This document shows, piece by piece, positions 760 to 61,300 of a stretch of DNA of 64,000 nucleotides. The notes under the pieces were generated by a model. It saw nothing but the letters and a program-made list of their open reading frames with translations. It searched no databases and had not been told where the DNA came from. Position 1 is the first letter of the stretch. Each line of letters begins with the position of its first letter. A program made the position numbers and the translations under genes. Where the stretch lies: positions 195,420 through 259,419 of IMG/VR virus record IMGVR_UViG_3300013094_000017. One strand, 5' to 3'.

Positions 760-1196
760 GTTTAAAGTTTAGCCAAGGTGTTTATAAGGTAAAGAATCCT
801 GAAAAATATGTAGGGTTAGGAAATCCTCGCTATCGCAGTTCGTGGGAAATATCCGTTATGAAGATGTGCGATGAAAATCCTGCCATCGTACAATGGGCCA
901 GTGAAAGTGTTAAGATACCTTATAGAGATCCACTAACAGGCAAGGCAACAGTGTATGTACCAGACTTCCTTGTGGTGTTCGTGGACAACAAGAATAAGAA
1001 ACGTGCTGAACTTTGGGAAGTAAAACCAATCAACCAAACTTTACTCGAGAAGGTAGGAAAGAATAAGTACAATCAAGCACAGTTCGTTAAGAACCAAGTG
1101 AAATGGGCAGCAGCTAAGAACTGGTGCAAACAGAATGGCCTAACATTTAGGATCATTACAGAACACGATTTATATCATCAAGGTAAAAAACTATGA
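756..1196 (+). CDS. gp4: head completion nuclease, T4 gp4-like (TnsA-N / PD-(D/E)xK fold)
   Basis: YRSSWE, WASE-x-x-x-IPY, Y-x-PDF and EVKP motifs; adjacent to terminase. Confidence 0.85.
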   Translation: MSLKFSQGVYKVKNPEKYVGLGNPRYRSSWEISVMKMCDENPAIVQWASESVKIPYRDPLTGKATVYVPDFLVVFVDNKNKKRAELWEVKPINQTLLEKVGKNKYNQAQFVKNQVKWAAAKNWCKQNGLTFRIITEHDLYHQGKKL

Positions 1197-1669
1197 CTAA
1201 GAAATTAGAAGAGATCTTAGATATCAACCAAAAAGAAGAAACAGTAATTCCTTTATCAGAAGCACCAAAGGCACAGCCGATCTTAGATCTACAAGAAAAG
1301 CTAGAAGAATTTGATAAGATTTCAGCAGCCTTGCCTAGAGTTAAAGGCCTCGGCGATATGGCAGATGATGAACTAGATGCTCTGGCTAATAAAGCAGAAC
1401 AAGCATACGATGATCTAATGGATCTAGGCATGAATGTTGATGCACGCTATGGTTCAAAAATGTTTGAAGTAGCGGCAAATATGCTTAATGCGGCTATTAC
1501 AGCAAAGACAAATAAGATTGAAAAGAAACTTAAAATGGTTGATTTGCAGTTAAAGAAATACAATATTGACAAGAAAACTGCACAAGATAACGGTACTGAA
1601 GTGCAGGGCGAAGGGTATATACTTACCGATCGTAACAGCATATTAGAGAAACTTAAGAATCTTAAATAA
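1193..1669 (+). CDS. probable terminase small subunit
   Basis: helical ORF with FEVAA-x-ML-x-x-A and coiled-coil tail, between gp4 and terL; family recall only. Confidence 0.55.
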   Translation: MTKKLEEILDINQKEETVIPLSEAPKAQPILDLQEKLEEFDKISAALPRVKGLGDMADDELDALANKAEQAYDDLMDLGMNVDARYGSKMFEVAANMLNAAITAKTNKIEKKLKMVDLQLKKYNIDKKTAQDNGTEVQGEGYILTDRNSILEKLKNLK

Positions 1670-1692
1670 ATAAAGCATAGGAACAAACAACC

Positions 1693-2307
1693 ATGACTAA
1701 ACAATTTAAAGACTATCTAGCAGAAAGCACACGCAAATACGATTTCCGAATCAAAATTGCAGGTGAAGTATCTGCTGATAAAGAAGCACTTATTAAAGCA
1801 TTGCTTGGAAAATTTCAATTAGCAGAATTTAAGAAAGCAGGAGTTACTCCAATTCAGGAGTTGCCATTAGACTTTCCTAAGATTAAAAATGCTAGTGTGA
1901 ATATCTATGAAGTAACATTAGATTATCCGGCTACACAGTGGGAACTATCAGAATACATTTGCGCCAATGCAAATATTGTTCCAGAATCAATTGTAGTGCG
2001 TCGCCCACACGAAGCATTAGAAGAATATCAACAACCGCAAGAAGCTCGCACAGAAGCACTATTAACAGATAGTGAATATAAAGAATCACCAAATGCTAAC
2101 TTTGATGACTACTATGGCGACAAATACAACACAGGCTTCGTTAAAGAACTTAACGATATCTTAAAATTACAACGCAAAGAACGCGGTGAAGAAATCCCAG
2201 AATCTAAAGCAGACGATGTTATTAAGAATCCAGGCAAAACTTCAAATGAAATTCCACAATACAAAAATAGTCCAATCAAACAAACAGACTATGATCCAAG
2301 GAAATAA
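1693..2307 (+). CDS. probable head-associated protein with capsid-targeting-like N-terminus
   Basis: MTKQFKDYLAE resembles the T4 capsid targeting sequence MKTYQEFIAE; TAAATA upstream. Confidence 0.5.
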   Translation: MTKQFKDYLAESTRKYDFRIKIAGEVSADKEALIKALLGKFQLAEFKKAGVTPIQELPLDFPKIKNASVNIYEVTLDYPATQWELSEYICANANIVPESIVVRRPHEALEEYQQPQEARTEALLTDSEYKESPNANFDDYYGDKYNTGFVKELNDILKLQRKERGEEIPESKADDVIKNPGKTSNEIPQYKNSPIKQTDYDPRK

Positions 2308-2309
2308 TT

Positions 2310-3893
2310 ATGAACATGAACGATTTATTAAAAAAACTAGCCGGCTTAGATACTAAGAAAACTTCAGTATTGAAAGAAAGCGTTAACGAACGCGGTATGT
2401 CTATGAATGTAGATGAATGGGAAACAGATCCTGCTGCACACGATCAAGAGTTAATTGACTCATGGCATGATCAGGTAGTTGATGCTTTAAATCAATACGA
2501 AATTGATGGCCCGCTATCGGATAAAGAATTAGAAGAACTTTGTCGCGCAGTGTCTAGTGATCTAAACGATGAAGTAGATCACAAAACTGTTCATAAAATT
2601 ATTGCAGGTGAATTAGACCAACGTGAACACGATCATGCTAATGATGGGTCATATGACAGCAGTGATGATGCAGCGGCATTGGCATCAGCAGGTCACGGCA
2701 GTGATGAAGATTACGGCACTTATGAAGAAGGTGCAGAGTTTGGCGCATACGATTACGAACAACTAGCACAAGCAGTATACGATAAGATCCCACACTTAGA
2801 TACCAGTGGAAGAGCTGCTGAACTTATCAGCACAGGACACATCTTTGCTAAAAAAATGTTTGGTGATAAAGAAGCCAACTATTTGTTTAGACACGAAGAC
2901 TTCCCTGCAGACTTCGTAAGTTCATATTCATATCTACAAAAACAACACGCAGGAAAAGAAAGCGCAGGTGCTCAAGGTGACGTCGGTGGCGCACACGGTG
3001 AAGAAACAATCAGCCCAGTACATGGAGAAAGTATGGAAAAAGATCTATCAATGGAAAGTTTAAGAGTACTTTCTGGCTTGAACAAAGCAATCAATGAATG
3101 TGGTATCCCATCTGCAATGGGCGCAAGCACACCGGCAAGTATTAATATTACCGCTGCCAATGGTTCAGAACTAACTGGAATGTTAAAAGACATTATGAAT
3201 TTAGCTGGCGTACAACAAGTTACTCCGCAACACATGCCGATTGATGTAATAGCATCTCCGGCAGAAGTTGATCATATGCCAGTAGCACAACACGAACCAG
3301 ATATGGCCACGCTTATCAAAGCAGTCGACCAACCAGAAGCAAATACTGATAGCATGAATGATCATGAAGAAGAAACAGACGAATCAAGTGGCGAGAAAGA
3401 AGAGAATCGTCCTTGGGATTCTAGCCCACACGAAAAGATTCGTCAAGACGGTGTTCGTAAATTTGGTGATTCAAATTCAGGAGATGGTAAAGGACGTATT
3501 GGTACACAACCAAACGCACGTACAACAGAATCAGTTGCAGAACGTTTATACTCTGAATATAAAAAATTCGTAGCAGAAGCCGCAGCAGACGAACCAGCAG
3601 CTCCGGATGCAGATGCTATTGCTAAACGTAAACGTCTACAAGCAATTAAAGATCGTCAAGAAGATGCAGCAGCAGAAAAATCATATAAGAAAGATAGCAA
3701 TGTTCGCGTGCATCATGCTAAACACGATGATGCTGATATGGACGAAGGATACGATAGCCGTGATGCATATCAAAAGTCTGATCCTAAACATCCAGATTTC
3801 AAAAAGAACTTTGAAAAGTATCATGCAGCAAATTCTCATAAATCAAGATCAGATGCACTAGCTGATTTTGTTAAGAAGATGAAATCAAGATAA
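2310..3893 (+). CDS. acidic probable internal head protein
   Basis: very D/E-rich; several L/V-x-E putative prohead protease sites; KLAGL, RVLSGL, MNLAGV motifs. Confidence 0.5.
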   Translation: MNMNDLLKKLAGLDTKKTSVLKESVNERGMSMNVDEWETDPAAHDQELIDSWHDQVVDALNQYEIDGPLSDKELEELCRAVSSDLNDEVDHKTVHKIIAGELDQREHDHANDGSYDSSDDAAALASAGHGSDEDYGTYEEGAEFGAYDYEQLAQAVYDKIPHLDTSGRAAELISTGHIFAKKMFGDKEANYLFRHEDFPADFVSSYSYLQKQHAGKESAGAQGDVGGAHGEETISPVHGESMEKDLSMESLRVLSGLNKAINECGIPSAMGASTPASINITAANGSELTGMLKDIMNLAGVQQVTPQHMPIDVIASPAEVDHMPVAQHEPDMATLIKAVDQPEANTDSMNDHEEETDESSGEKEENRPWDSSPHEKIRQDGVRKFGDSNSGDGKGRIGTQPNARTTESVAERLYSEYKKFVAEAAADEPAAPDADAIAKRKRLQAIKDRQEDAAAEKSYKKDSNVRVHHAKHDDADMDEGYDSRDAYQKSDPKHPDFKKNFEKYHAANSHKSRSDALADFVKKMKSR

Positions 3894-11662: not shown

Positions 11663-13109
11663 TTGTAAAATAGTAATTAAAGACGAAGTGAATATTAAGA
11701 TTGAAAATCTCGATCTTGATACTCGCAAGGCCTTGGTTAGAAAATTCAAGTACGAAGATCCAACTGCACGCTATCGTCCTAGCTATAAATTAGGCAGATG
11801 GGATGGTGCGGTTAGTTTCTTTGGCCTAGGTGGTACAACATATCTGTATATGCTACCACAGGTACTTGAGGAACTTGAGAAACGAAATTACTATATCGAA
11901 GTAGAAGATCTGCGCACTAGTCCGTTACTTGAATTTGATCTAGTAGATGAAGAATATTGGGGTGATTTATGCTGGCCCGAAGGACACAGATTTGCTGGTG
12001 AACCTATTAGACTGCGTGACGATCAGGTTGAAGTTGTAAACAAATTCTTGGAAAATCCGCAGTGTATCCAAGAAATCGCAACGGGCTTTGGTAAGACAAT
12101 TACTACTGCTACACTTGCTAAGATATGCGAAAAGTATGGACGTACTATTACTATTGTTCCAAACAAAAGTTTAGTTGAGCAAACAGAAGAAGACTTTATT
12201 AACTGTAGATTAGATGTAGGAGTGTACTATGGAGATCGTAAAGATTTAAACAAGACACATACTATCTGTACTTGGCAAAGTTTAAACATACTTGATAAGA
12301 AAAATCAAGATGATAACGAACTATTAAGTATTGCAGAATTCCTAGAAGGGGTTAGTACAGTAATGGTCGATGAAGTACATATGGCCAAAGCAGAAGTCCT
12401 AAAGAAATTGTTAACACACAATATTTCTCATGCACCAATACGTTGGGGCCTGACTGGTACTGTGCCTAAAGCAGAAATTGATCAACTAAACATCAAGGTG
12501 TCATTGGGCGAAGTTGTACACGAAGTCAAAGCTCACGAGTTACAAGAGAAGGGCGTGCTAAGTAATTGTCACGTTAACATCGTTCAAACCGCAGAATGGA
12601 AAGAGTTTGGAGGGTACGCTGAGGAACTAAAATACCTCGTAACTAATAAAGAGCGAATGGATTTTGTTACTAGATTAGTACAGTCAATAGGTGATACAGG
12701 TAATACATTAGTTCTGGTTGACAGAATTGAAACAGGACGTATAATAACAGATGCTATCGAAGATTCAGTCTTCATCAGCGGCAACGTGAAAACTACTAAG
12801 AGAAAAGAAGAATATAATGAAGTGGCAATTAATGATAACAAGATTATTGTGGCGACTTACGGTGTGGCCGCTGTGGGTATTAATATCCCTCGTATTTTTA
12901 ATATGGTTCTTTTGGAGCCCGGAAAGAGCTTTGTTCGAGTTATCCAAAGTATTGGACGAGGCATTAGAAAAGCCGACGACAAAGACTTCGTTCAAATATG
13001 GGACATCACTGCTAGCACAAAATACGCTAAACGACATTTAACAGAAAGAAAACGGTTCTATAAAGAAGCAAAGTATCCGTTTACAATTGACAAGGTAAAG
13101 TACCAATAA
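11655..13109 (+). CDS. uvsW: UvsW-like SF2 DNA helicase
   Basis: ATGFGKT, DEVH, GLTGT, QSIGRGIR motifs; TTG start. Confidence 0.93.
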   Translation: MASCKIVIKDEVNIKIENLDLDTRKALVRKFKYEDPTARYRPSYKLGRWDGAVSFFGLGGTTYLYMLPQVLEELEKRNYYIEVEDLRTSPLLEFDLVDEEYWGDLCWPEGHRFAGEPIRLRDDQVEVVNKFLENPQCIQEIATGFGKTITTATLAKICEKYGRTITIVPNKSLVEQTEEDFINCRLDVGVYYGDRKDLNKTHTICTWQSLNILDKKNQDDNELLSIAEFLEGVSTVMVDEVHMAKAEVLKKLLTHNISHAPIRWGLTGTVPKAEIDQLNIKVSLGEVVHEVKAHELQEKGVLSNCHVNIVQTAEWKEFGGYAEELKYLVTNKERMDFVTRLVQSIGDTGNTLVLVDRIETGRIITDAIEDSVFISGNVKTTKRKEEYNEVAINDNKIIVATYGVAAVGINIPRIFNMVLLEPGKSFVRVIQSIGRGIRKADDKDFVQIWDITASTKYAKRHLTERKRFYKEAKYPFTIDKVKYQ

Positions 13110-13826
13110 TTAAGTGGCTCGTTTAGAATCCCAATATGCTTTCCGTGCTGCTGACATTCGTTGTTTAGTTTCGTTAGACATTACTCTGCCTTTCATTTTA
13201 TTAGACATGTCTTTTTTCTGAGCATCTGTTTTAGCAGGCATAGATTTACCCTTGTTACCTTTTGATATTTTTTGTTTAGTTTCTTCAGAGTGTTTATACC
13301 CTTTTCTTGATTCTAATATTTTATCAACTGTTGATTGGGCAACAACCTTTCCTTTATGTGATTCTGATAATTTTAGTTTTTGTTTATCGGACATTGATTT
13401 GCCTTTATTTGGACTAGGTTTGCCTTTACGGGCTGCTGACATTTTTTGTCGTGTTTCTGCTGAAACGATTTTACCTGCGTGACGTATAGACATTGCCTGG
13501 GAAAAGTTTAATTTTGCTATTTCGTAGAATTTACCTTTAGATACATGCCTTATTTGATTGGAATTTTCTACCCGTAGTACCATCCACGCAGCGTACCACA
13601 TCTTGTTAATGTGATCTATATCCTCTAACATTTTTGGCAATAGTATGTGAACTAATCGATGTTCTTGTGCTGTGAGAGAAACTAAATTATTTTTATTATT
13701 CCCTCCACCTAGACATTTTGGAATAATGTGATGAATTTCTTTATATGTTTCTTTTGATAATTCTCTTGATCTTGCTCGATCAATGATGCTATAATAACAC
13801 TTAGTATACTTGTTATCTAAATACAT
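13110..13826 (-). CDS. HNH homing endonuclease with NUMOD3-type repeats
   Basis: EIHHIIPKCLGG...N..NLV.LT..EH..VH; repeated S-x-E-T-R/K-Q-K-M/I-S; own TAAATA at 13859-13864 (minus). Confidence 0.85.
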   Translation of the reverse strand: MYLDNKYTKCYYSIIDRARSRELSKETYKEIHHIIPKCLGGGNNKNNLVSLTAQEHRLVHILLPKMLEDIDHINKMWYAAWMVLRVENSNQIRHVSKGKFYEIAKLNFSQAMSIRHAGKIVSAETRQKMSAARKGKPSPNKGKSMSDKQKLKLSESHKGKVVAQSTVDKILESRKGYKHSEETKQKISKGNKGKSMPAKTDAQKKDMSNKMKGRVMSNETKQRMSAARKAYWDSKRAT

Positions 13827-13876: not shown

Positions 13877-14380
13877 ATTCAAATCCTAACTTTAGAAAAT
13901 AAAACGTACTACCTAAATGATCTACCAGATGAAGTAGATGATGATCTCAGATTTAGTGTATTAGATAATAGTGATTCGAATAATCCAGATTACTTTTTCA
14001 TTCCACTGATCTTCTTAGAATCATTTACCGCGCCGGCAGCAGTATTGAAAGTTGGTCCTTACGAAATTACTATGCCATTAGATTGGTGTACTATTGTAGG
14101 TGATGCAGACGGTCCTGAGATGGAAGTATTACCATTGACCAGTTTAAATGATAGAGGATTCAAAACATTTTGTTTCAATCCATTAGAATCATTTCGCCCG
14201 GAACTACTAGAGATTGATATCATTAATGTCTATCAAGATGTCAAATGGTATTTTCCAAAGATGAAACCCGGACAATTATTATGCACTCCCTTACACAGCG
14301 GTGAGAATCCAACGTGTGCTTATTTTGTTAAAGAAGTAAGTCGTCAGAGTGAAATAGTAGATTACACCAAGTGTTGGTAA
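13877..14380 (+). CDS. conserved hypothetical protein, predicted ATT start (ORF track starts late at TTG 14045)
   Basis: frame open from 13853; SD GGAGA 13866-13870 sits 6 nt before ATT CAA ATC CTA ACT TTA GAA (I/M-QILTLEN). Confidence 0.65.
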   Translation: MQILTLENKTYYLNDLPDEVDDDLRFSVLDNSDSNNPDYFFIPLIFLESFTAPAAVLKVGPYEITMPLDWCTIVGDADGPEMEVLPLTSLNDRGFKTFCFNPLESFRPELLEIDIINVYQDVKWYFPKMKPGQLLCTPLHSGENPTCAYFVKEVSRQSEIVDYTKCW

Positions 14381-33215: not shown

Positions 33216-33437
33216 TCAACCGATATAGTGAACTATTAATCCAACTACGCCTGTGAGCAGCATCACACCGTTCACAACGATTAAGCTGGCCTTGCGCCAT
33301 TCTATAGCTATAGCAAACCATATAGCACCGCCTACGCACAGCAACAGGGGCCCTTGTGGGTAGTATCCTAAGCTGTTAACTGCTGTGCCAACGATTAAGA
33401 TCGTTGTAGCTATCCATTCTAATATTAAGATTCTCAT
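33216..33437 (-). CDS. small multi-pass membrane protein
   Basis: three hydrophobic helices; ATG at 33437 overlaps the upstream stop. Confidence 0.6.
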   Translation of the reverse strand: MRILILEWIATTILIVGTAVNSLGYYPQGPLLLCVGGAIWFAIAIEWRKASLIVVNGVMLLTGVVGLIVHYIG

Positions 33438-34018
33438 ATGTCTAAAGTACTTCCTAATCCTTTGTGATAGAACAAATGTTGTCCCACCTTGGTTATATAC
33501 TGCGTACGGTCTGCCCAAGCCGGCGATACATATGATGCATGATACATTAAAGCCTGCTGTAGGGGTCTTACACGTACCTTATCCACCAGCACGCTATGCG
33601 CAATCATTTGACTCTCAGCCCACAACACACCCTTGGGCTTGTCCAACTTCTTCTTAAGTGTCCACGAGAACTGTGCCTTTGCGTGGACTACCTTGCACAC
33701 ACTGTTACCCCAATGGCCCGTCTTGAGTCTGTTTAAGGTTACCTGTGCAACTGCGTATTTGCCCTGCACCGGCTCCACCCCAGCTTCGTAGTATACATTC
33801 TCTGCTAGACAAGTCAAGTCATTTTTTGTGTAATGGACATTCTCATCTGTCTGCACAAGAAAAGCCTTGATCTCACGGACCTCATTGTGGACCTCAGTGA
33901 TCTCACGTTGCTGGAACGACAGCAATGCTACCACTGCCGTTCCAGTTGCCGCTATGAGTAAATTACTCTTCGTCAACACTGTCTGCTTCCCACATCTCTT
34001 GGTTTTCGGAGATGGCAA
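33434..34018 (-). CDS. SleB-like cell wall hydrolase (Hydrolase_2)
   Basis: CLAENVYYEAG, AVAQVTLNR, QFSW, YHASYVSPAW, VGQHLFY; N-terminal anchor; start may be internal. Confidence 0.88.
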   Translation of the reverse strand: MPSPKTKRCGKQTVLTKSNLLIAATGTAVVALLSFQQREITEVHNEVREIKAFLVQTDENVHYTKNDLTCLAENVYYEAGVEPVQGKYAVAQVTLNRLKTGHWGNSVCKVVHAKAQFSWTLKKKLDKPKGVLWAESQMIAHSVLVDKVRVRPLQQALMYHASYVSPAWADRTQYITKVGQHLFYHKGLGSTLDI

Positions 34019-34535
34019 AAGTATCGTCTAACTCTTGCGGTAGTTGATCACGAGCGCCTTGTGCATCACCCCAGTCTTGGTAGTAGTCATCATTGCCGTC
34101 TTGATAGATGCCAGCGAACTGCATACCACCTTCATAGTAGTAGCCAAGCACATCAAAGCCCGCTTCTTCCAAGAACGCATAAGCGCCTACTGGCGGAGCC
34201 CAAGCACTGTCAAAGTGCAGGGTGATGCTGTGGAAGCCGTCAATGGTCTCATTGATCTCGTAGTATTCATCCTCACTGCCAACATCCCACTTGGTTCCCC
34301 AATTGCTCACGCACCAGTCATACCAAGTGCTGTAGCCATATTTCTCAAGGTTGGCTTCATATAGGGCCTGTAGTTCAGCATCATCAGTACCTGGAGCACT
34401 GGTGATCATCAAAGCCTCGGGCACAGGAGCGAACTCCTGTAGCAATACCCCACGCTTAAAGGCCTCTTCGACACGCTGGATCTGACCAGCATCTTTGTGA
34501 GTAAGTGTTACGATATTCTGGCACCAGTTTGGAAT
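33963..34535 (-). CDS. DUF1281/YubB-like phage protein, predicted ATT start
   Basis: ATT-CCA-AAC-TGG-TGC (PNWC) just after the cassette SD; WCVSNWGTKWD and FDSAWAPP motifs. Confidence 0.75.
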   Translation of the reverse strand: MPNWCQNIVTLTHKDAGQIQRVEEAFKRGVLLQEFAPVPEALMITSAPGTDDAELQALYEANLEKYGYSTWYDWCVSNWGTKWDVGSEDEYYEINETIDGFHSITLHFDSAWAPPVGAYAFLEEAGFDVLGYYYEGGMQFAGIYQDGNDDYYQDWGDAQGARDQLPQELDDTFAISENQEMWEADSVDEE

Positions 34536-34603
34536 TTTGGGTTCCTACCTTTCTTAATTTGTTAGTGTAAGTGCATTATAGCACCTTTCGGTGCTATGGT
34601 CAA

Positions 34604-37437: not shown

Positions 37438-37514
37438 TGGTGCTCCGTCAGGGATTCGAACCCTGCCTCCCACGTTATGAGCATGGTACTCTCTACCTAG
37501 TGAGTTACCAGAGC
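37438..37514 (-). tRNA. tRNA with CAT anticodon (elongator Met or Ile2), CCA encoded
   Basis: cloverleaf GCTCTGG/ACGGAGC (G7-A66 mismatch), ACTC/GAGT D stem, CCATG-CTCATAA-CGTGG, CAGGG-TTCGAAT-CCCTG; lacks initiator features. Confidence 0.88.
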
Positions 37515-58326: not shown

Positions 58327-61300
58327 ATGTCAATACAATACATCAACACAGGTACCGCGGCCAACAAAGGTAACGGTGACACCCTTAGATTAGCATTCAC
58401 TAAGATCAATCAAAACTTTGCGGAGATTGCCGGTAGCAATAATGTTAAAGGATCAGTTGGTGAAGTTATATCTAATCCATCACTACAACGCGGTATTTCA
58501 GTAACATACAATACTGTAACACAATATGCCAGCTTCCTAGTTAACATAGCCAATACCAGCACCTTAGGCGGAGTTAAAGTTGGTAATGGTATTAGTGTAG
58601 ATGGCACTGGAGTAATTAGTGCGTTCGATGGCAACTACAATAACCTAGCAAATATTCCGCAGGCCTTGGGCACTACTGATAGCCCAACATTTAATAATGT
58701 ACACATCACTGGCAATGTTGACATTGCTGGACAAACTACTATTGTTAATTCAACTGTGGTAACCACAGACGACCTAACATTAACTCTAGCCCACAATTCA
58801 GCAAATGCTGCGGCCAGCAATGGCGCCGGTATTATTGTTAACGGTCCTGTAACTCCTGCTAGTATTACCTATAACAGCGACAATGATTCTTGGGTGGCTA
58901 ATAAACCATTTATCGCAACCAACATATCCATCGGTGGAAACAATGTTGTTACTGCAAACCAATTAGGCGATATCACATTCTCAACTAATGTAATTGGTAC
59001 CAGTAACGCAGGTGAAGATCTAGTACTTACTCCTAATAGTACTGGTACATTGGTCTTAAACAAAATCAGTACATTGAAGGCCTCTGGTACTATCTATCAA
59101 GGTACTGCCTACGATAATATAGAATATACCGATACTTCAATTCGTGTTGATGCCGACACCAACAGTTACGCACAAATGATTATGAAGAATCACAATGCTG
59201 GCGATAATGCCAGTACTGATTTGGTCATACTAAATGACAGTGGTAATGACTTTACTAATCTAATCGACCTTGGTATTAACAGCTCAGGATATAATCAAAG
59301 TGCCTACAGTGTAACACAACCAGGTGACGGATACTTGTTCACAGATGGTGGCAATTTGGTATTAGGTACCCAGAGCCCAGGTAAAGCGATTATATTCCAT
59401 GCAGGCGGAACCACTACAGATGATGCAGGCGGTTCACTAACACAGTACGCTTGGACATTTAACAGACGAGTAACAACCATAGTCAACCAACCTGCTCGCT
59501 TAGATTTCTTAGTACAAAACACCAGTAATAATGTAGAAGCAAGCTCTTATTATCAAGCACAAAACGATTTAAACGATTACATACGAATGGGTGTAAACTC
59601 TAGTCAACGAGTTGATGGCAACATCTTACAAGGTGAGGCATTCTTATATCCAAGTAGTTCTGGTGGTACATTCCACATCGGTAATCACTCTAATATAAAT
59701 TTCTATACCGATCCAGATGCTGGATATACAGGCACTCCTACATTGGTATTGAACTATGACCAAGGTGCTGCTATATTAGATGCTGATTGGATCCCAAATA
59801 AAGATAACACATATAACCTAGGTAATTCAACCAGCACATGGCAGGCATTGTATCTAAACTCTACATCAACTGTGGCATTTGGCACCAACCAATTAGCACT
59901 TGATAATTCAGGCAATGTTCTAGTTAACAGTACACCAATCTTAGGCAGTATCGAAATAACCGGCGCAACAATAACATCAAAAGATACCTACGGTCCTTTA
60001 ATTTTATTAGGCAATGGTGTTACTAGAAATGCTTCTATCCAATTTACTCCAGAATCTACTGAGATTGATGTATATGGTAGTTTTATGTCTGGACCTCCAA
60101 ACACTTATGATTTAGGTGGACCTTTCAATCATTGGCGCGGTGTATGGGTAGGCACCGACGGTATACAATTCCTTGATGGCAGCTCATTAACATCAGCTAA
60201 CAGTGTAGGAGCTCAGGTTGTAGTTAACTCTACAGGTACAGTGGCCAATACAGGTACATTATGGTATAGTACAATTGATGGTAGACTATACGTTGGGTAT
60301 GACGGTACATTTGTTGATACAAATCCTTCTCCTGTACTTGACCTATCAACTGTTACACAAAATATTATTCCAGGCGTAGATTTAACCTATGATTTAGGTA
60401 GTCCAACTAACCAATGGCGTAGCCTATATGTAGGCACATCAACTATCTATTTTGGAGGAGTTCCTCTTACAGTTGACACCTTAACAAATACACTGTTATT
60501 AAATGGCTCGCAAATAACAGGTGGTTCTGCAACAACCTCAACTTTGGTCAATGGTGGTCCTAGTGTCACAGTAGACAGTAATGGGGTCCTTTCAACACCA
60601 AATAATGTAATATCTAGCGGTACAGTATTTGCTACCGGATTAAACACTACTGGACAAATTGTTATACCTAATAATGGGGTTGCTGGCGGACTTGTTTCGC
60701 AAAATGGTCAAGGAAACATTTATTTCAATACTGACAACAGTCTTAATTTCATTGTCGATGGAACTTATCAACATATATTCAATGCCGACGGCACTATAAT
60801 ATTTGGCGGTGGATACATATTCCCTAATACTCAAGGAACTCAAGGTCAAATTTTAGTATACGATCCATCTGGTTCTGGAGATTATACTCTGCGTTGGCAA
60901 AATCCACCAACTGCGGTTTCATCACTGACCAACGATATCGGATACATCACAGCCAATTACCCAGGTACTTTTGAATCAACCGGCCTACAGGTAAATGGTA
61001 ACGCACACGTTACAGGTAATTTACAAGTAGATGGAGTGTTTACTTTCACTGGCACAGCCACAGTTATCAGCGTAAGTTCTGCTACATTCTTTGGTAATGC
61101 CAACGGTTTTGGTGCGTTCTACGCAGGGGTAGTTGGTTATACTCCACTACCTTATACAGTAGCACAGTTTACAGCCAACTACGGCGACTACAGCCAGATT
61201 AACTTCCAAAACTTAAACAATAGTGCCACAGCGTCAACTGATTGGGTGGCCACAGCAGACAATGGCAGTGACTCTACTAACTTTATCGACCTAGGTATCG

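Follow-up and report, generated by a model that had tools for sequence, protein, structure and literature searches.

Can a phage gene genuinely begin with the codon ATT, and if so, where does such a start come from? The question is raised by a locus on the minus strand of a 64,000-nt stretch (hereafter, the window) that forms the last 64 kb (positions 195,420 to 259,419) of the 259,419-bp virus record IMGVR_UViG_3300013094_000017. The record derives from lake water, is estimated to be 73% complete, and includes a terminase, a gp32-type SSB, a DnaB-like helicase, a ligase and 22 tRNA genes. A first-pass annotation, made from the sequence alone, had proposed that an early gene at 34533-34603 starts with ATT where every other early cassette has ATG, that its family begins MPNWC, and that a second, independent ATT start in the same window makes a sequencing error less likely. 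The observation itself is confirmed: the sequence is exactly as described, and the ATT lies where relatives of the gene have their ATG. The interpretation is supported only in part, since the leader in front of the ATT does not belong to the early cassette, and the two ATT starts are not fully independent in origin.

Reading along the minus strand, an upstream 84-aa gene (34858-34604) stops at a TAG (34606-34604) and is followed by a standard early sigma-70-type promoter of this phage (34603-34561 including its leader), with a −35 element TTGACC at 34603-34598, a 17-nt spacer and a −10 element TATAAT at 34580-34575. The leader shared by the early cassettes (34574-34561) ends in CACTAAC; a different 25-nt leader (34560-34536) then leads to the ATT (34535-34533), which is followed by CCA AAC TGG TGC. 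The frame opened by the ATT runs for 190 codons to a TAA at 33965-33963 (gene at 33963-34535) and reads IPNWCQN. No in-frame start is possible upstream, because in-frame stops lie at 34556-34554 (TAA) and 34547-34545 (TAG), the latter four codons upstream with only GAA CCC AAA between it and the ATT. The first ATG, GTG or TTG is a TTG at 34445-34443, 30 codons further on.

The ATT is the homologue of the start codon in relatives. A word search found 1061 homologues, the closest of which (85-70% identity) are 189-193 aa long and begin MPNWC; the closest of all is 85% identical and 190 aa long, with M at position 1. The 13 that were aligned begin MPNWC, apart from one that was called short. In an unbiased tblastn sample of 79 IMG/VR loci, 78 have ATG at this codon. 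Distant homologues from Roseobacter phage CRP-207, Puniceispirillum phage HMO-2011 and cyanophage MED4-213 align from MPNW/MPNH at the same column. With regard to family membership, several database homologues carry PF18406 (Api92-like; PF06924, DUF1281, was also considered), and phrog_20518 matches the window protein at 1.7e-18; the window protein itself has no Pfam hit at E 0.01, and its relatives L019 and L032, two diverged Api92-like loci, score 20.7-21 bits against a cut-off of 22.8. The gene is referred to here as Api92-like.

It is conceivable that the ATT is a sequencing or assembly error, or a private mutation of one contig, as it differs by a single base from the ATG of 78 of 79 relatives. 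This was named beforehand as a point that could overturn the proposal, and it is now all but excluded. Three other assemblies also show ATT; among other assemblies of the same phage, two are identical, namely L012 (over 6,570 bp) and L023. Logan contigs (contigs, not raw reads) of four lake runs from separate studies, two from 2016 and two from 2020, cover 34533-34535 without any difference. The strain in one of these runs (X7) carries four substitutions, at 34511, 34512, 34514 and 34527, and still keeps the ATT and the whole leader. In addition, the same ATT is present in the diverged relatives L014, L019 and L032, and ATA is found in a further one, L022.

A second alternative is that the gene is no longer translated from its ancestral N-terminus, being either in decay or translated as a truncated product from the TTG at 34445. 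Gene callers do truncate such genes in practice; the protein of L014, a relative that is 74% identical in protein, is called as a 154-aa product (P0008) from an internal GTG on 23 contigs, and AUU is a weak start (PMC3592434). However, the 30 N-terminal codons stay open and conserved in ATT-bearing lineages, and a start at the TTG would remove P2, N3, W4, C5, N7, H13 and D15, which are nearly invariant. In codons 2-30, the differences between the window and L014 are 8 synonymous and 8 non-synonymous; L014 compared with L231, which is nearly identical to it in this gene, gives 2 and 0. The TTG has only a GGGG run 3 nt upstream. This alternative is regarded as very unlikely.

The leader is not the cassette's own. 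Between 25448 and 36529 (minus strand), the window contains about 14 near-identical early cassettes, each composed of TTGACA, a 17-nt spacer, TATAAT, the 14-nt shared leader, GGAG and ATG, and each followed by a small ORF. Eleven copies lie within 3 mismatches, against 0.02 expected by chance (11-16 copies in the window and genome). The first-pass annotation was right that the other 13-14 cassettes have ATG, but in these the ATG comes 16-17 nt after CACTAAC, behind a GGAG leader, whereas the ATT lies 25 nt after CACTAAC behind an unrelated sequence; it is therefore not the same slot. L014 has exactly the same leader and ATT as the window, with 0 differences in the 35 nt before the start against 26 in the first 111 coding nt.

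Relatives at 78-85% identity (L017, L018 and L233), as well as L231, have no promoter and no such leader. In these, the gene is coupled directly to the upstream 86-aa gene, as GGAGG-N6-ATG. L231 and L014 thus provide a natural indel pair: they are collinear at 89% identity except for a 684-bp insert in L014 that ends at the start codon. The insert holds a 192-aa ORF on the opposite strand with an HNH endonuclease motif (P0122), a promoter, the leader, and ATT in place of ATG. The wider block, consisting of the 86-aa gene, the Api92-like gene, a hydrolase gene and a DUF6552 gene, is conserved across these jumbo phages; the gene after the Api92-like gene (window 33434-33962, minus strand) is a Hydrolase_2 (SleB-type cell-wall hydrolase) in all relatives and overlaps the Api92-like stop.

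The 18 nt preceding the ATT (34553-34536), of the form GAAAGGTAGG-N8, comprise an extended Shine-Dalgarno (SD) sequence interrupted by one bulged T (GAAAGG-T-AGG) and an 8-nt A-rich spacer. Exact scans of IMG/VR show that this module core is widespread. The window's 18-mer, ending CCCAAA, was found in at least 10 stretches, a one-base variant (CCTAAA) in at least 34, and a second variant (GACGGAAR in the last eight positions) in at least 29, giving at least 73 in total. Over all viral and metagenome loci, a tally that includes extra assemblies of the same loci, the next codon is ATT 74 times, ATA twice, ATC twice and TTG once (the last not followed by a gene); it is never ATG in these 79 cases. 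A looser pattern (the first 13 bases, any 5, then AT) gave, among ORFs of 50 codons or more, at least 43 ATT, 15 ATG, 4 ATA and 3 ATC, the ATG cases having other spacers. In 596 Gb of bacterial and archaeal genomes the 18-mer occurs 5 times, which is chance level, and in none of these is it followed by ATH. No other copy lies within 4 mismatches in this phage genome. Among GenBank phage isolates, megablast with the locus found nothing, and short-query blastn with either module variant gave only chance 17-18-nt hits, so that no cultured carrier is known.

The genes behind the module are unrelated to one another and fall into at least ten families. They encode Api92-like proteins (five diverged versions), T4-type neck protein gp14, class-II glutamine amidotransferases (four diverged versions, with Cys directly after the start), Pyr_excise/DenV, a major head protein, a tape measure protein, an SSB, tail-fibre-like proteins, a 65-aa CxxC protein, and others of unknown function. 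Where profiles exist, they support true N-termini behind the module: Pyr_excise aligns from residues 2-82 to profile 2-76, the major head protein from 2-156 to profile 2-161, and gp14 from residue 1. The catalytic Cys of the amidotransferases must follow the initiator residue, which also argues against a start further inside the gene. Cultured relatives of gp14 and of the CxxC protein start with ATG. The many copies are not phylogenetically independent; they represent about ten gene families and a few dozen lineages.

A further possibility is that the ATT is an ordinary Ile codon reached from upstream, by stop-codon readthrough, by frameshifting on CCCAAAA, or by re-initiation after an upstream ORF, so that no de novo initiation on AUU occurs. 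ATT, ATC and ATA are indeed all Ile codons, CCCAAAA has the form of a slippery heptamer, and in many loci an endonuclease ORF stops 1-9 nt before the ATT, or overlaps it. In the window, L014, L019 and L022, however, a promoter lies directly upstream and no ORF enters the module; the CCTAAA and GACGGAAR variants are not slippery; and fusion to an endonuclease would bury the N-terminal catalytic Cys of the amidotransferases. Frameshifting and UAG readthrough were rejected on these grounds, and this reading as a whole is highly improbable.

The upstream ORFs that do run into the module elsewhere point to its association with homing endonucleases. They belong to three classes, namely GIY-YIG with NUMOD3, HNH (PF01844), and HNH_3 with a helix-turn-helix. 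They end inside the module in different frames: at its TAG (ER-stop), at the TAA of the CCTAAA variant 1 nt before the ATT (RKVGT-stop), or at a stop that overlaps the last T of the ATT. Many are truncated remnants of 29-94 codons, which is the expected decay of such genes with the 3' end retained. The tail is not confined to recognisable endonuclease genes; in L225, a 714-aa ORF with a YqaJ-like recombinase domain (842-2983, minus strand) also ends in the module-encoded tail, here RKVGTKN, in front of an ATT-started SSB gene. In the window, the sequence from 34563 to 34536 (frame N K L R K V G T Q) matches the tail of the GIY-YIG gene in L188, at 2988-3015 (N R I R K V G T stop), in 24 of 28 nt. 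The window reads AAC AAA TTA AGA AAG GTA GGA ACC CAA here, and L188 reads AAC AGA ATA AGA AAG GTA GGA ACC TAA. No endonuclease gene lies between 34536 and 34858 in the window itself, so that the interpretation of these approximately 28 nt as an endonuclease remnant rests on this similarity and on relatives. That endonuclease genes of unrelated classes share the same tail is explained only by assumed cassette replacement at fixed junctions.

An endonuclease next door is not in itself sufficient for ATT, as shown by 79 close gp14 loci retrieved by tblastn. Of these, 63 have ATG and no module, 16 have ATT and the module, and none are mixed. Most ATG loci have gp13 directly upstream, with TAA-N-ATG coupling, but 13 have an endonuclease gene upstream whose tail (QKVTN, QKLGH, RKLKN or RKLGI) is homologous to the module-encoded RKVGT but lacks the SD-like bases. 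Predicted pairing with the 16S 3' tail, calculated for a generic CCUCCUUA tail and a generic CCUCCUUUCU tail respectively in the absence of known hosts, is −8.1/−12.8 kcal/mol for the module with ATT, −3.0/−6.0 kcal/mol for endonuclease tails followed by ATG, and −4.8/−5.3 kcal/mol for gp13-coupled ATG. Thus, ATT goes with a strong predicted SD, not with an endonuclease gene as such. At the window locus, the predicted duplex is −9.0/−13.7 kcal/mol, against −6.6 kcal/mol for the phage's own cassette leader. The 5' untranslated region is unstructured, folding less well than shuffled sequences (z = +1.05), and has no credible match in Rfam; two small hairpins that were considered (GGU/ACC and GGAA/UUCC) are not kept in the second module variant or with ATA.

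The second ATT start noted in the first-pass annotation exists as well. At window 13877-14380 (plus strand), a highly conserved 167-codon frame opens with ATT behind GGAG-N7. Phrog_11279 aligns residues 2-156 to profile 2-155, and 6494 homologues were found, the 120 best listed being almost all 167 aa at 100% coverage. Relatives without an insert (L257-L259) have a helicase gene followed directly by ATG, whereas in the window a 238-aa HNH endonuclease gene with NUMOD3-like repeats lies divergently 50 nt upstream (13110-13826, minus strand). This gene belongs to the same family as the one in L014. Both ATT starts of this phage thus lie at endonuclease insertion sites, although three more members of the family in the phage record (at 58677-59567, 67190-67870 and 132491-133267) have ATG-started neighbours.

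Taken together, the most probable explanation, held with reasonable though not full confidence, is that the Api92-like gene is translated from AUU at 34535, with initiator tRNA placing fMet there as at any near-cognate start, and that the AUU belongs to a self-contained translation-initiation module of about 21-28 nt. What the analysis demonstrates is the anatomy of the sequence, its conservation and distribution, the linkage to endonuclease genes, and the covariation of SD and start codon; initiation at the AUU, the level of expression and the direction of the evolutionary steps are inferred from sequence alone, no RNA run being found to hold the locus. In this view, the module forms the 3' end of free-standing homing endonuclease genes in many uncultivated phages, and would serve as ribosome-binding site and start for whatever gene lies downstream. 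The window locus would then be the footprint of an endonuclease-cassette invasion between the 84-aa gene and the Api92-like gene, with the endonuclease body gone and the remnant fused to a standard early promoter at CACTAAC. Either an L014-like cassette lost its endonuclease gene, or the promoter-module unit came first and L014 gained the endonuclease gene later. In a distant Api92-like locus, L019 (6740-6860, minus strand), the module and ATT-CCA-AAC-TGG-TGC are preceded by a promoter, and before that promoter lies a second, ATG-led copy of the first five codons (ATG CCT AAC TGG TGT) in the same frame, which looks like the resident gene start left behind when a promoter-module-gene segment was recombined in.

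Mechanistically, 30S subunits would bind the strong, bulged SD on an open leader, and initiator tRNA would read AUU as a near-cognate codon; the strong SD pairing and the open, unstructured leader may thus compensate for the weak start and give moderate expression that does not depend on coupling to the upstream gene. This contrasts with the translational coupling of adjacent phage genes (stop and start overlapping or 1-3 nt apart) seen for the Api92-like gene and gp14 in relatives without the insert; many endonuclease ORFs likewise stop 1 nt before the ATT, but in the window the module stands behind a promoter with no upstream ORF, so that it must work by de novo initiation. AUU was 6-8 times weaker than AUG in E. 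coli reporters (PMC3592434), yet the module also precedes genes expected to need high expression (major head, neck and tape measure proteins), so its strength in the natural hosts is uncertain. A dedicated initiator is not in evidence: of the 22 tRNA genes, two have anticodon CAT, and both lack the initiator hallmarks (three G-C pairs in the anticodon stem, and unpaired 1-72).

The persistence of AUU may reflect hitch-hiking with a co-adapted SD. Alternatively, and more tentatively, AUU may be actively selected. This could occur in three ways: the non-G third base may make the endonuclease-bearing allele immune to cleavage at a target that includes the invariant ATG; a weak start may make the downstream gene depend on the cassette's strong SD or promoter, favouring retention of the cassette; or AUU may give IF3-sensitive, infection-stage-dependent translation, an idea also raised in the first-pass annotation and which remains a hypothesis. 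Consistent with selection, ATG never follows the three canonical 18-mers whereas T, C and A all occur in the third position; ATT is kept in gp14 lineages only 66% identical in protein, and in 29 of 29 IRC-family loci; both ATT starts of this phage lie at endonuclease insertion sites; T4 endonuclease genes embed promoters of downstream genes, which favours their retention (PMC2988022); and IF3 discriminates against AUU in infC (PMC3592434). On the other hand, the 13 gp14 loci with an endonuclease gene and ATG show that ATT is not needed for immunity or for carrying such a gene, three other copies of the HNH family in this genome have ATG neighbours, only about four independent third-base changes are seen, so that the absence of G is not statistically decisive, and the remnant persists here without any endonuclease gene. 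No IF3 (IF3_C) or RegA match was found in the 73%-complete record, although the negative for RegA is weak, as the RegA control gave no signal in any of 14 control genomes.

In its furthest form, which is doubtful but not excluded, this idea describes a horizontally spreading translation-start unit that obligately uses AUH codons. Endonuclease cassettes of several nuclease classes would carry a fixed SD-spacer-AUU module that overwrites the native ribosome-binding site and ATG of whatever gene they land in front of, the non-AUG codon being kept by selection for self-immunity of the junction or for dependence of the host gene on the cassette. Start-codon identity would then be part of a selfish element's strategy, and AUU would support expression of essential, abundant virion proteins in some hosts.

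AUU starts and endonuclease-embedded expression signals are each known; the fixed, widely spread SD-plus-AUH unit is what is new, and literature searches for AUU/ATT starts in phages or next to homing endonucleases, and for the motif itself, found nothing relevant. The AUU starts of E. coli infC and pcnB (PMC3592434) are likewise near-cognate codons at true starts behind an SD, with lower intrinsic efficiency than AUG, but those are single host genes, and in infC the AUU serves IF3 autoregulation. Here, a fixed unit of about 21 nt recurs before at least ten unrelated phage gene families and is tied to homing endonuclease genes; the product is Api92-like rather than IF3, and no link to IF3 is shown. 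In T4, free-standing endonuclease genes inserted between two phage genes (segG/gene 32, segA, segE, mobB and mobC) carry signals for the downstream gene inside their own coding region, which is argued to favour their retention (PMC2988022). Those signals are promoters, whereas here they are the ribosome-binding site plus a non-AUG start codon, and the same short sequence is shared by GIY-YIG, HNH and HNH_3 genes at different loci. The promoter-early stem-loop (PeSL) cassettes of T4-type phages, reportedly short repeated units that flank small early genes and appear to move or recombine as modules (Arbiol, Comeau and Krisch 2010), resemble the window's 14 or so promoter-leader cassettes; the present module is instead a translation unit, not a promoter or terminator, occurs once in this genome, and carries a non-canonical start.

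The finding matters for annotation, because standard gene callers allow only ATG, GTG and TTG, and every gene behind this module is therefore missed or truncated, as for the P0008 cluster and for gp14, amidotransferase, DenV and capsid genes in dozens of IMG/VR contigs. The module provides a simple search key for such footprints. If the inferred initiation is correct, a reusable SD-plus-AUU unit works across phages of 35-60% G+C, in front of essential structural genes, which is at odds with the view of AUU as a rare oddity of infC and pcnB. It would also extend the habit of homing endonuclease genes of embedding their neighbour's expression signals from promoters to the translation start itself, and gives a concrete, testable case for how selfish endonuclease cassettes reshape, and leave footprints in, the start regions of host genes.

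The tRNA complement of the record has some features of its own. One of the two CAT-anticodon genes (window 37438-37514, minus strand) sits alone among the early cassettes, far from the 21-gene tRNA cluster at the start of the record; it is not initiator-like and could be an elongator Met or an Ile2 (lysidine) tRNA. In addition, at positions 3245-3336 and 11895-11989 of the record, ARAGORN calls a 92-nt tRNA-Ile(TAT) with a long insert and a tRNA-like gene with a two-base anticodon, which are possibly intron-containing or degenerate tRNAs.
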